Origin: Octopus bimaculoides | Taxonomy: Eukaryota | Reading direction: 5' to 3' | Assembly (NCBI RefSeq): GCF_001194135.2 | Contig: NC_068989.1 | Span: 76,015,249-76,079,248 of the forward strand | Length of the DNA stretch: 64,000 nt | In this document: piece by piece, positions 16 to 24,000 of the stretch | Numbering within the stretch: the stretch's first letter is position 1 | Layout of the letters: each line of letters starts with the position of its first letter | The notes under the pieces: model-generated | What the model saw: the letters and a program-made list of their open reading frames with translations, nothing else | The model's database searches: none | What the model was told of the DNA's origin: nothing | Made by a program: the position numbers and the translations under genes

Positions 16-74
16 ATGTGGCTGTCGCAGAAAGAGAGTAGAATGTACAAATCTTATATAAACGCACATAGGAG
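16..74 (+). CDS. RasGEF gene candidate exon (phase 0 to 2), MWLSQKESRMYKSYINAHR
   Basis: Acceptor ttttactttttccag, donor GAG|GTAATA; only one open frame; phase fits the 2902 exon. Confidence 0.6.
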
Positions 75-3000
75 GTAATATAAATTTATTTCTGTCGTAT
101 CTTCTGTGAACCAAAAATATCATTATTATGGATATAATACATTGTTTAAAATATTGTACGATGATGGCGAGTTGGCAGAATCGTTAGTACTTCGCGTGAA
201 ATGCTTAGCGGTATTTCGTCTGCCGCTGCTTTCTGATTCAAATTCCGCCGAAGTCGACTTTGCATTTCACCCACTGGCTGGAGTCGATATGATCGACTAG
301 CCCCACCTTCACCCCAAATGTTCAATGCCTTGTGCCTAGAGTAAAAATAAATATTTAAAATATTGTATATTATATTACTTAGGCGGCCAATTAGCAGAGT
401 CGTTAAAGCGTTAGATATAATACTTGGCGTTATTCATTTCGGCTATATATGAGTTCAAATCTCGCCGATTATAACCTCCCTCACGGTTTCGGGTTGATAA
501 AAAGTTAAAATACCATTTCTATACAGAAATCCATTCTCACTCTGTCTTTCTGTCTCTTTCTGATATAAATGGCCTCTGGTGGGGCTCGACTGAAAGCTGC
601 CCCAAGATAAGCTACACTTCGTGACAGTTGAGAACTTATGAACTTATAACAGGATTATTATTATAGTGAAGTCACTTCTTCGGTGATTTATGATAAGACA
701 GGTATGCATTATTATATTAAAATTTATACGGTATAATACCTGGGTAATTTAATACACCGAGACTTTTGTATTGGAATCCATGTTGCTATGATATTGATGT
801 AATAAATTATGAATTTATAGAGAAGTTGCAAATAGGTTACGCATTTATTTGTCATGTTACTGTAATATATCATTATGCTGGGAGCACACACATACACACA
901 CACACACACACACACATATATATTTATAGATATAGATGATAATACAAATAAAAAATATATATGCATGTATACACACATATATGTATATATGTACATACAT
1001 ATATATATGTGTNNNNNNNNNNNNNNNNNNNNNNNNNNNNNNNNNNNNNNNNNNNNNNNNNNNNNNNNNNNNNNNNNNNNNNNNNNNNNNNNNNNNNNNN
1101 NNNNNNNNNNNNNNNNNNNNNNNNNNNNNNNNNNNNNNNNNNNNNNNNNNNNNNNNNNNNNNNNNNNNNNNNNNNNNNNNNNNNNNNNNNNNNNNNNNNN
1201 NNNNNNNNNNNNNNNNNNNNNNNNNNNNNNNNNNNNNNNNNNNNNNNTATATATATATATATATATATATATATATATATATATGCATATATGGTACAGG
1301 ACGTCACATGACGTAAACAACATGAAATCCGAAGACAAACTTGGGTGTCCATCCAACGAGAGAAACAGATGGAAAACAAGACAAGTGACGTAAAGAACGA
1401 CTCTTCATCAGTTGACGGCTGTACAACTACTCCTCATTTCGAGCATTTAACGACAATATGAAGCTTCGAAAGGCAGTTGCTCCCGCGAACCAAAATAAAA
1501 TTTGGGATTTGCGGAGGGTCAAAGTTGGTAACAAAAACAGGACAAACCAAACGAAAACAAACACAAAGAGCCGTTGGGCCAGACGAGATACCGTAGCGAA
1601 CGCTGTTAGAATATTGTCTTTGACAAGAGAAAAGATAGAAGAGGAGACAAATAAGAATGCATCTGCTCTGTACGACAGATTAAAGGAAAAGAAAGATGGA
1701 CGATGGTCACGTTTGAGTAACGAGAGGGAGAGAGAGAGAGAGAGAGAGAGAGAGAGAGAGAGAGAGAGAAAACAGTGAAGAGGAAAAAAGAATTAGAGAA
1801 AGGAAGAGTGGGAAAACTAAAGGGAGAGAGAGAGAGAGAACAGTACAGGGTACAGTCGCATCAAAATTATTAAGATAAACTTACTTGGAAATGGTTGCGT
1901 GGCGTTCAATCATATAATAATATAAATAAAATATATATATTTGCATATATACATATATGTACGTACACACACACACACACACACACACACACACACACAC
2001 ACACACACATATATATATATATATATGCATATATTATTATATGTTAGAACGCCACGCATCCATTTCCAAGTAAATTTATCTTAATAATTTTGATGCGACT
2101 CTACCCTGTACTGTTCTCTCTCATCCCCTTTCATTTTCTATTCCTTCCTTTCTCTAATTCTTTTTTCTCCCCTTCACCGTTTTCTATCTGTGTTTCTCTC
2201 TCTCACCCTATTCCTCTTTCACTCTTTCTCGTTACTCACGCGTGACAATCGTTAATTTTTCTTTTTCTCACGTGATCATCTTTCTTTTCCTTTAGTCTGT
2301 CGTACAGTGTTCGATCGACCTGCTAAAGATCTCAATTAGATCTCCCGCAAATCACACGCTGATATCTTAAATAATATTTTTCTCCTTGAATTTGCCGCAA
2401 GCAAGATGTGTTCAAACTGCAAACTATTCCGGGGTATGAGGATGAAAAATCTAGATATTAAGGAGAGGGGAGTTATCTTTTAATCGACATTACTCCGAGG
2501 TCTCTTTTGACCAGGAAGAATAGCAACTGTGAAGAACCAAAAAAGAAACGTCCAGTACAAAACCACATTGCGCCAACTTAGAATCCTAGAATTTGGCAAT
2601 TATCAATAACCAGGAATGGTCAAAAGTTGTCGGAAAGTAAGGTCGGACAAAATGCCGCTAAGCATTTTCTCGGCGTAATAATGATTCTGCCTTATTCAGA
2701 TACAATGTTTGTGTCAAATTTTGGCGTAAGGTCAGAAATTCCTTCAGCGGAATTTGAACTCAAAACGTAATGGCGGACGAAAAACCGCTAAGCATTTTGC
2801 CCGGCATGTTTATGCTTTTGCCAGGTATGTTTATGTTTTTGCCAGCTCAACGCCTTAATTCAAATGTAATATTAAAAATTATTTAATTCATTTCTTTGTA
2901 GATATTCACATACAGAAGAAGTGGATGTAGCTTTATTAATCTCTCGTTCCATCAAGAAAATAGGTAATATGAAAAGAAATATATTTTCTAAATATTTTGT

Positions 3001-21000: not shown

Positions 21001-24000
21001 ATTTGTACTCATATTTTAAAGAAACGTGACCAAACATTTTGTGCAATGCACTACTGAGCCTACCAATTCCACTGCCCTTAATTTTTAATATGCGCATATG
21101 GGAGGGAAGTGAAAATACGATTTTATAGACTCTTGTAGATTACTGGTCTTTATTTTATCGACCCTGAAATTATGAAAGGCAAAATTGACAAATTTATTTA
21201 ACTCTGAATGTAAAGGGTTGTAACCATATACTTCATGTTTGATTTTGTTTTTCGTTTTGTTCTATGTTGAAAAGATCCTGTCAATCCACCTTTCCCTTAC
21301 CTGCAAAATAATTGTTCCTAATTTAGGCACAACCTCAGCAATTTTATGGAAAGGGCATTTGCTGATACCGTCCGCCCTAGTACTTGTCTGGGACTTTGTT
21401 CTATCGATACCAGATGGTTGAAAGACAGTGTTGTCTGCGGCTGGATTTGAACTCAGAACGTAAAGAGCCGGAATATCTACCAGAAAAGTAATAATTAGGA
21501 AAACATATGAAGGGAAAAATAATTTTAAAAACTAGATTACAAGTTCGATTCTTCACCTGGAGAATCGAACTTGCACTGCAATCATGGGATTGCTGAAGAG
21601 TACTCCTTTTAATCTCCAGTTGTATAGTGCTTGCAAGCCAAACACATGATCGTCCACATGAAAGAACTTTTCTTGTTCAGCCAAAACACAAAGTTTTAAA
21701 CATTTCAAAAGACATAGTAAATATATACAGAACTTGTAATTATAATATTCAGAAACTTGTCTCCAGTTGTTCGTCATATGGATAACAGGACAGGAGGAAA
21801 TATATAGCGAGTTGTTAGTTCTGAATTTTAGAGTGGTAATTGATAAAATGCAAATGTTCCTGTATATATTATAGCATTGAGTAATGCAGAGAAGCAGTGA
21901 TTGGCCCCTGGAAACTTATAATTTACAGTGCTATTGTTTATAAAATGGCCTGTTGGCAAGTCACAGTGCTATTGTTTACAAAATACAGTTTCAAATTAAA
22001 TATATACTTCATTCACTACATGCCAATAATCCCTGTTACTCACCTCGGAGGAATGCATATTACTCCGAGTAGTTATTTTATTATCCTTACTCTGTAAAAT
22101 TGTAATATTTTAACAATGTAATTAATTTTCTTTTCTGTTTTTCTTAACTGCATTTCTGAACAATTCAGTTTTTTTTAAAAACTGTTTATGTATTTATTCA
22201 TTTATTGTTTTCTAACATTTTCTTCAGTTTACACCAGAAATTAACATGGGTGTTTTATGGTGACAATTTTCGTTCTTATCGTAATGTATTGCGCAAAGCT
22301 GTTAAGAATCCTCCCTATATACCTTGGGTTTTCCATTTCCTGAGGCATGTTGCGATACCATCTTGGAGCACGTATGTACACACTTGGAAGAAAATAAAAC
22401 GCGGAGCATCTGGCAAAATTCATGTTAACGAACATCTGCACTATCAAACAGCAACCAAGATGAAATACAAGACGTCAAAGCTATCACATTTTGAAAATGC
22501 ATCAGTAACTACACCAAAAATTATAACAAATAAAGAGCCTGAACCATTGAAATCAAGATTTTGCAAAGACTTGACGTGGAGAGCTGAGAAGAACGTAGCT
22601 ACTAATAAAGATAAGAACAAACATATAGGGCCTAGTGTGATCACAACTGATATGTTAAAATCTGTCAAGTTACGTAAAGTTCCTAAGGAACATATATACA
22701 ATGAGGGAAGTAAAAAGGAAAGACAGAAAGGAGTGGAAGAAAACCCACAAAGATCAGCACATTTCAATGAATTAAGAACATGGTTTGATGGTGAAAATTC
22801 ATCACGACACTCGTCATTTATTTGTTCGCAAGCGCCAATAGATTCTGTTAAGAATATCAGAAGTTCAAATACATATCACGATAGTCAGTTACAAATTCCA
22901 GCACCAAACTCAGCAACCGATATTGAAGACATATATCAAAGAACATGTAATGAATATCTATCTTCTGAATGGAGTATCTCGACTTGCCTGAATGCAAATA
23001 CTTCATGTGAGGAAGATGATTGTTTTCGTAATGAAATGCGGATGAGAGAAAATATTTCGCAAACCCGACAAAACGTGCATCTACATAAAGATAGAAAGTC
23101 TGAAGAATTATTAAAAAAGAAAGGAAAAAATACAGTAAGTACAGATCTCGTTTAATATTTTTACCTAAGAAAGGCAGCGAGCTGGCAGAAACGTTAGCAC
23201 GCCAGGCAAAATGTTTAGCAGTATTTCCTGTCTTTACGTTCTGAGTTCAAATTCCGCCGAGGTCGACTTTGCCTTTCATCCTTTAGGGGGCGATTAAATA
23301 AGTACCAGTTACGCACTGGGGTCGATATAATCGACTTAATCCCTTTGTCGGTCCATGTTTGTCCTCTCTATGTTTAGCCCCCTGTAGGCAATAAAGAAAT
23401 AAATATTTTTACCTAAGAAAAGCGATGAGCTGGCAGAAACGTTAACACGCCGGGCAAAATGCTTAGCGGAATTTCGTCTGTGTTTATGTTCTGAGTTCAA
23501 ATTCCGCCGAGGTCGACTTTGCCTTTCATCCTTTCGGGGTCGATAAATTAAGTACCATTTGCGTACTGGGATCGATCTAATCGACTGGCCCCCTCCCCCA
23601 AAATTTCGGGCCTCGTGCCTAGAGTAGAAAAGTATATTTTTACCTACGACTAAGGCGGTGAGCTGGCAGAATCGTTAGCGCGCCGGATAAAATGCTTAGC
23701 GACATTTCATCCGTCTACATGTTCTTAGTTCAAATTGCACCGATGCCGACTTTGTTTATCACCCTTTTGGGGTTGATAAAATAAGTACCCCTTACTTTGA
23801 AATTGCTTCTAATGTGCCAAAATTTGAAATCAATATTTTTACCTAACATCATAATTAGATAAACAGCATCGAGCTTAATTACCTCTCTTTAAACGACTAA
23901 ATGTTTTTTTTTCTGTTTTATACTTATTTGTAATCATCAAACAGTCTGCCTCCAAACGTGTGTCCAAATTAATGATAATCGTTAATTAATATTAACATGA

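Follow-up and report, generated by a model that had tools for sequence, protein, structure and literature searches.

A stretch of 64,000 nucleotides of the Octopus bimaculoides genome (NCBI RefSeq assembly GCF_001194135.2, contig NC_068989.1, positions 76,015,249 to 76,079,248 of the forward strand), hereafter referred to as the window, carries the 3' two-thirds of a RasGEF-like gene, the N-terminal exons of which are situated outside it, on the upstream side. Ras, Rap and Ral are universally activated by Cdc25-homology domains, and only rarely is the Cdc25 fold known to serve another purpose. An earlier reading of the same DNA, made from its letters without database searches (the sequence-only reading), had ended the gene model at position 23134 with a truncated domain and had proposed a guanine nucleotide exchange factor (GEF) homologue with a degenerate catalytic hairpin. 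The gene is described here as nine exons on the plus strand (16-30864), which together encode a partial protein of 623 amino acids (aa). The window is AT-rich (about 33% GC), with many short repeats and assembly gaps, and its introns are 90.5% identical to the Octopus sinensis chromosome CM016868.1.

A HMMER search of 1.8 billion representative proteins, with the O. sinensis orthologue P0001 as the query, retrieved two close relatives. P0003 (1264 aa), an O. sinensis sequence, is a fusion of an upstream paralogue and the present gene. P0004 (1380 aa) is that paralogue: its N-terminal region is PH-like, its Cdc25 N-part shows the same degeneracy as the present gene, about 800 linker residues come next, and its C-terminal piece ends in ...WKCSLCGCDVCIYADLPQSLLLCFQKAANCYNFQSQYNVRMFLKSYIFTEMEKLFTESKN; the N-part, the linker and the C-terminal piece are thus found together in a single protein. 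Searches of the window by tblastn with these two relatives placed the exons at 2902-2963, 10091-10175, 24327-24393 and 30560-30864. All the junctions of the gene model are AG/GT and a single unbroken frame runs from exon 1 (E1) to exon 9 (E9):

16-74, plus strand: E1, tentative; MWLSQKESRMYKSYINAHR plus 2 bases; acceptor ttttccag, donor gtaata; in frame with E2
2902-2963, plus strand: E2; ..YSHTEEVDVALLISRSIKKI; tblastn with P0003 residues 1003-1027, 64% identity; acceptor ctttgtag, donor gtaata
10091-10175, plus strand: E3, linker preceding the Cdc25 domain; DSGDDPDSEESIRYSICKQKYPRKEDCY; tblastn with P0003; acceptor tttttacag, donor gtaagt
15070-15193, plus strand: E4, start of the Cdc25-homology domain; PNFTDIKAEQLAFELTYV...HLRL; aligned to the canonical profile from position 15
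15498-15626, plus strand: E5; KYSNNSVAVLMTFCDQVISMVITEII...KYFLQ; FCDQVISMV where FN..S.WV is expected
19600-19733, plus strand: E6; VACVCWKLQNFNTV...GKTWSLFKAKYPFTY plus 2 bases; donor gtgagt
22228-23134, plus strand: E7, 907 nt; end of the Cdc25 core (NFRSYR, PPYIP), degenerate hairpin helix and a fast-evolving linker of about 250 residues
24327-24393, plus strand: E8; GGKTKNPKKTKCTRSVPSSKKQ plus 1 base; tblastn with P0003; acceptor aaataaag, donor gtagga
30560-30864, plus strand: E9, last exon; linker, IDFWK, CPFCGKDIC beta-hairpin and three C-terminal helices; stop TAG at 30862-30864

The gene end of the sequence-only reading had to be given up, as position 23134 is a splice donor followed by two frame-compatible exons, E8 and E9. 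The donor (ACA|GTAAGT at 23134|23135) is perfect, and both O. sinensis and a third octopod have it in identical form. Six codons past it, the stop at 23153-23155 is the first in the intron and represents intron read-through. E8 is required in the model, because E7 and E9 stay in frame only via E8, and its splice sites are kept in O. sinensis; E9 was recovered by tblastn at 83% with P0003 and 55% with P0004. The gene is thus predicted to continue past 23134 through E8 and E9 by way of junctions deduced from the DNA. An internal GTATGT at 22372 was set aside as a candidate donor, since it is unneeded given the conserved donor at 23134 and the exons found beyond it. At the other end of the model, E3 shares 96% identity with O. 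sinensis, and E1 resembles the orthologous model P0003 poorly and is therefore uncertain.

The coding sequence is not interrupted by the assembly gaps. Those at 1013-1247, 3709-4183 and 12992-13338 are all intronic (between E1 and E2, E2 and E3, and E3 and E4, respectively) with the flanking exons in frame, the third of them lying in a stretch (about 12913-14195) that has no O. sinensis counterpart. A fourth gap (29716-30279) falls in the last intron, across which P0003 joins E8 straight to E9. The orthologous peptide of P0003 is contiguous over the E2-E3-E4-E5 junctions; only the E1-E2 junction, over the gap at 1013-1247, lacks the support of an orthologue. The plus-strand open reading frame (ORF) pieces of 7800-15069, concatenated (about 2,600 residues) and searched for the upstream gene model, gave no match; the upstream exons are short or lie outside 7800-15069.

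The Cdc25 scaffold motifs that the sequence-only reading had listed are all present where it had placed them, on the plus strand and on canonically spliced exons:

15101-15118, plus strand: LAFELT, motif of the Cdc25 core
15534-15560, plus strand: FCDQVISMV, in place of FN..S.WV; then TEII, motif of the Cdc25 core
19627-19635, plus strand: NFN, motif of the Cdc25 core
19690-19698, plus strand: KTW, motif of the Cdc25 core
22265-22282, plus strand: NFRSYR, motif of the Cdc25 core
22310-22324, plus strand: PPYIP, motif of the Cdc25 core

The spliced protein scores 124-130 bits with a profile of 98 canonical RasGEF domains over profile positions 15-181, its best match among solved structures is RalGPS1 (PDB 3qxl, E = 2e-9), and a match to the RasGEF hidden Markov model (HMM) PF00617, the check that had been suggested for this domain, is available precomputed for P0001. 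As judged by these profile comparisons, the RasGEF-domain match is far beyond chance. Alignments to the canonical profile and to the solved domains end right after PPYIPW.FHFL. The protein keeps 33 of the 64 canonical columns with at least 60% conservation, and the conserved columns that are lost lie mainly in FN..WV, in RL..TW, in EGN and at the G and D of LG.YL.DL. The replacement of FN..S.WV that had been reported is borne out in E5, where the canonical N (87%) has become D and the canonical W (82%) M. A REM domain was not found before E4, where a short acidic linker (E2-E3) stands; the orthologue region upstream of the Cdc25 domain matches the PH-like domain of an invertebrate family and not REM, and the model of an insect relative has a disordered stretch where REM would precede the Cdc25 domain.

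The altered hairpin after PPYIP, on which the earlier proposal was built, is real. In place of the canonical LG.YL.DL.FIEEGN ... INF.K, the protein reads WVFHFLRHVAIPSWST (22325-22372) followed by about 300 inserted residues, and this reading is kept in three octopods as well as in the paralogue, which carries the same degenerate helix as PPYIPWISHFLNHTIIPTWKTYVHGWKK. The block as a whole is as follows:

22325-22399, plus strand: degenerate hairpin-helix block WVFHFLRHVAIPSWSTYVHTWKKIK, nearly invariant in three species

In the numbering of SOS1, which we take from our own alignment, the substitutions would be F929 to W, G931 to F, T935 to R, L938 to A, T940 to P, E942 to W and N944 to T. The catalytic helix of the octopus hairpin has a proline halfway along. 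The SOS1 hairpin numbering used here agrees with a published account (PMC10470544). The ratio of non-synonymous to synonymous substitution rates (dN/dS, computed against O. sinensis unless the third octopod species is named) is 0.17-0.20 against the third species for the first part of E7, which includes the hairpin. Degenerate as it is, the first hairpin helix is conserved and constrained; it is under purifying selection and therefore does something. The equivalent region in the AlphaFold models of relatives is a short helix of only 8 residues. Upstream of the gene and outside the window, a tandem paralogue with the same degenerate hairpin is seen in P0003 and P0004.

The sequence-only reading had added that no INF.K segment follows. 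This stands in so far as a motif scan of the whole window yielded no exon with a canonical EEGN, INF.K or LG.YL.DL, but the coding sequence does continue, in E8 and E9. The IDFWK of E9 lands on the canonical INF.K only in an alignment built with MAFFT --add, and this placement carries no statistical support.

Selection differs sharply along the protein, and a conserved island interrupts the linker:

Cdc25 N-part, 177 codons: dN/dS 0.19
linker, 257 codons: dN/dS 1.17
C-terminal piece in E9, 71 codons: dN/dS 0.31
22637-22690, plus strand: linker island VITTDMLKSVKLRKVPKE, conserved amid an otherwise neutral linker

Against the third species, the dN/dS of the linker is 0.86-0.91. Over the three species it contains no stop and a single indel, in-frame and of 9 nt, as against an intron indel rate of 6.5 per kb, and in simulations of neutral substitution the probability of its remaining open is P = 0.012 (O. 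sinensis) and P = 0.0004 (third species). About 300 residues after the hairpin thus evolve at the neutral rate, yet their reading frame is kept by selection. Such a pattern is expected of a disordered spacer whose frame has to stay open for the sake of a functional part downstream, and not of a terminal tail. When an island is defined as at least 10 of 12 residues invariant over the three species, E7 has three of them, namely its residues 1-57 (through ...PSWSTYVHTWKKIK), VITTDMLKSVKLRKVPKE and RKSEELLKKKGKNT. The L..V.LRKV pattern of VITTDMLKSVKLRKVPKE is what we take to be a loose likeness to WH2 or LKKV-type motifs, with a different spacing. The insert of the paralogue holds predicted long helices at residues ~955-1080 of P0004.

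The HMMER search also brought together a family of invertebrate proteins, some 570-980 aa long. In these, a homologous N-terminal domain is followed by a Cdc25 core and, after PP.LP, by a non-canonical helix; then come 100-150 inserted residues and a C-terminus with the consensus ...CQ.A..Y.F....EFLLKARY.ED.ENF.ISL.LEP. Its named members are insect proteins annotated as 'uncharacterized' or generically as 'guanine nucleotide exchange factor'. P0003 matches the PH-like N-terminal domain of the family twice (E = 2.6e-6 among 151 proteins), in a region encoded outside the window. The insert after the PP.[IL]P helix and the C-terminal Q..A..Y.F....EFL....F..S are both found in the octopus protein, and the terminal LEP is absent from it. 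By sequence comparison, the octopus gene is assigned to this uncharacterised invertebrate family, marked by PH-like domain(s) and a REM-less Cdc25 domain with a hairpin insert. Schistocerca LOC126176513 and the Holotrichia 'guanine nucleotide exchange factor' have the same architecture as the octopus gene (PH-like domain, core, non-canonical helix, insert, C-terminal helices), from which the octopus genes depart in their low identity (20-26%), two N-terminal domains, an insert of 300-800 residues, an extra Cys-containing hairpin, the loss of the final LEP and tandem duplication.

The fold of the family can be read from the AlphaFold2 model of the insect member P0014. Residues 1-133 form a PH-like sandwich of seven strands and a helix (predicted local distance difference test score, pLDDT, ~90), the Cdc25 core and three C-terminal helices have a pLDDT >90, residues 390-512 are disordered and only an 8-residue helix follows PPFLPFIG. 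Foldseek aligns the model across the insert with target-normalised TM-scores of 0.79 to RalGPS1 and 0.82 to RasGRF1. At the family level, the modelled Cdc25 fold is complete, with a disordered loop in place of the hairpin tip.

Several comparisons suggest that E9 encodes the corresponding end of the octopus domain. In hhalign, the octopus C-terminal piece matches the C-terminus of the invertebrate family with E = 1.5e-5 and a probability of 80%. The family HMM scores 7-13 bits on the piece, exceeded by at most 4 of 2,000 shuffles, and the HMM p for the octopus piece by way of the invertebrate family is about 0.001-0.02. In the MAFFT alignment A1, the piece is collinear with the family C-terminus, with invariant Y, L and S, and the family C-termini in turn match the canonical profile at positions ~200-255 in all 14 members tested. 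It is likely, on these alignments, that E9 completes the Cdc25 fold with its last ~45 residues. Alignments A2 and A4, in which the C-terminal pieces were misplaced, were dropped from structure prediction. Between IDFWK and the terminal helices lies CPFCGKDIC (30685-30711), with CSLCGCDVC in the paralogue. This Cys-containing segment, which the insect relatives lack, takes the form of a beta-hairpin in the model and could be a small metal-binding knuckle.

The explanation that best accounts for the whole is a split Cdc25 domain with a complete fold and a non-canonical hairpin, serving as a binding platform; its probability is put at roughly 0.55. E4-E7 encode the Cdc25 core as far as the first hairpin helix, and the helices of E9, past the disordered linker, would close the same fold; if E9 supplies the closing helices, the domain is therefore complete, though split at the hairpin tip. 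The remodelled hairpin, with its mid-helix proline, without equivalents of L938, E942 and N944 and with its tip turned into a linker, would probably be unable to open switch I canonically, and the module may then act as a GTPase- or partner-binding platform positioned by the PH-like domains, with weak or no exchange. Judged from its residues, the hairpin probably cannot pry open switch I canonically, and a binding platform with weak or no exchange activity is the most likely function. A non-canonical, weak or inactive exchanger is favoured because of the hairpin losses, the changed motifs and the lack of a REM brace; the earlier suggestion of a 'pseudo-GEF' or scaffold rather than an active GEF is plausible.

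The split-domain explanation has to be weighed against several results that speak against it. With the canonical RasGEF profile, the octopus C-terminal piece scores no higher than shuffled sequences, whether it is taken by itself or joined to the N-part. With the family profile, fusing the piece to the N-part gives a score that 19 of 1,000 shuffles reach, which is marginal, and in the same test 184 of 1,000 shuffled sequences equal the score of the paralogue. The paralogue was modelled with AlphaFold over P0004 residues 301-1380 from a shallow alignment, and the model has a mean pLDDT of 43; it shows the short helix, the beta-hairpin of the Cys segment and the three terminal helices, with a pLDDT of 44-60 for the C-terminal piece, the docking of which is not seen. 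This model was dropped from the fold search for its mean pLDDT. Of the orthologue models, P0003, whose joins of E3-E4-E5 and E8-E9 favour the gene model, skips E6 and E7, and the RefSeq-style model P0001 ends inside E7. Inactivity argued from motif loss alone is weak, because the Candida albicans Cdc25, with T and H at the L938 and E942 positions, is reported to exceed human GEFs in activity by up to 2,000-fold (PMC10470544). The same enzyme lends support to an active exchange factor, in which the short helix and the IDFWK helix would form a working hairpin and the insert a regulatory loop. Purifying selection on the hairpin block and on both domain halves fits such an enzyme, as does the best match to RalGPS1 among the solved structures, a protein that is likewise REM-less; as RalGPS1 is the nearest solved relative, the specificity might then be Ral-like. 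The change of G931 to F, the proline in mid-helix, a helix of only about 8 residues in the models of relatives and the alteration of several highly conserved Ras-facing motifs argue the other way, and an active exchanger is considered unlikely.

That the protein ends in exon 7 at the stop at 23153, leaving a Cdc25 domain truncated after the first hairpin helix and a disordered tail, is improbable. In three species the ORF does reach a stop, at almost the same position in each, and the P0001 and P0002 models were called so. However, the stop comes six codons past a perfect, conserved donor, and a tail with nothing functional after it needs no preservation of frame at a dN/dS of ~1. Moreover, E8 and E9 show conservation and constraint, P0003 and the paralogue P0004 both have them joined to the gene, and a core deprived of its last helices would expose its interior, judging by the P0014 model. 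The 3' end of P0001 (...REHVSKKV) was rejected as an artefact, as it needs a 32-nt skip without canonical splice sites. A decaying tandem duplicate, either a pseudogene or a nearly neutral copy, is very improbable. Neutral evolution of the linker, exon DNA identity barely above that of the introns and a 1-nt deletion in E3 of the O. sinensis assembly, which splits the gene models, would agree with decay; the dN/dS values of 0.19 and 0.31 in the two domain halves and the frames, all intact in the window and kept in three species, would not. The deletion (L006 4545-4628; CTCTGAGGAAT to CTCTG-GGATT) is the reason why the O. sinensis locus is annotated as two models, one a 513-aa protein ending out of frame in E4 and the other P0001, starting from an E5 methionine. 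The exon as read in P0003 lacks the deletion, which may perhaps be an assembly error. With the octopus models fragmented or fused, three of them in conflict in O. sinensis, the domain is easily mistaken as truncated.

In the E8-E9 intron, a tRNA-Thr(TGT)-like sequence on the minus strand (27607-27684; Rfam 31.9 bits, threshold 29; ARAGORN agrees) may represent either a gene or a repeat derived from a tRNA. A ~170-bp repeat is present in many copies (166-288, 3374-3606, 5302-5523, 18008-18144 and 23155-23800), with a cluster directly 3' of exon 7 and the translated motif ...AETLARRAKCLAV...SNSAEVDFAFHPFGVD. Repeats of a second family lie at 6641-7047, 20586-20816 and 25755-25963, and both families are present in the O. 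sinensis locus too. The ORFs at 36060-36395 (plus strand) and 56143-56607 (minus strand) resemble remnants of Tc1/mariner-type transposases (...LFHHDNAPAH... is one example), and a long CT/GA-rich low-complexity tract (43567-44213) gives rise, on either strand, to spurious ORFs about 190 aa long.

Among known systems, RalGPS1/2 offers the closest solved structure, and its Cdc25 domain, like that of the octopus protein, is not preceded by REM; RalGPS1/2 presumably also lacks the EEGN motif, as the octopus protein does. The RalGPS proteins have the order Cdc25, PxxP, PH and an intact hairpin. The octopus protein has the PH-like region first, a degenerate helix and a tip insert of about 300 residues; with the order reversed and no PH domain after the Cdc25 domain, it falls outside the RalGPS class (N-terminal Cdc25, PxxP, C-terminal PH). 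The RasGEF subfamilies surveyed earlier comprise PLCE1, RASGRF, KNDC1, RASGEF1, RAPGEF1, RGL, RALGPS, RAPGEF2/6, RAPGEF3/4, RAPGEF5, RAPGEFL1, RASGRP and SOS (PMC3141262), and none of them combines a PH-like N-terminus with a Cdc25 domain after it that is REM-less and carries an insert. A literature search brought up no description of this invertebrate family or of any cephalopod RasGEF.

The NSP family (BCAR3, SH2D3C) provides, by analogy, the precedent for a Cdc25 fold used as a binding module: the CDC25H domain of BCAR3 is bound by the CCH domain of Cas, and direct GEF activity of BCAR3 has not been demonstrated (PMC8266394, PMC11083344). The NSP proteins carry SH2 at the N-terminus and lack a long insert, whereas the orthologous octopus models show PH-like domains and not SH2, and no sequence-specific relationship of the octopus protein to the NSP family was found. 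A wider proposal, possible but doubtful, is that an undescribed and widespread invertebrate family of the Cdc25 fold gave up the catalytic hairpin and that a long, disordered and fast-evolving arm was inserted at its tip. Pseudo-GEF scaffolds would then have originated a second time, independently of NSP/BCAR3, and the octopus would have added tandem duplication and a Cys hairpin that possibly binds metal. The family could reveal a new class of invertebrate Ras-family adaptors and, if the hairpin is indeed remodelled and split, would offer a natural test of the portion of the hairpin needed for exchange.

With the canonical RasGEFs (SOS1, RasGRF1, Cdc25, Epac2), the octopus protein shares QLT, R, FI.VA..C, NFN, TW, NF..YR and PP.IP. 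It differs from them in the absence of REM, of the W of FN..WV, of the R of RL..TW, of EEGN and of INF.K, in the loss of the G and D of LG.YL.DL and in its split hairpin. The octopus domain is most likely not truncated and is at most a candidate pseudo-GEF; it is a variant of the known kind of Cdc25 domain.

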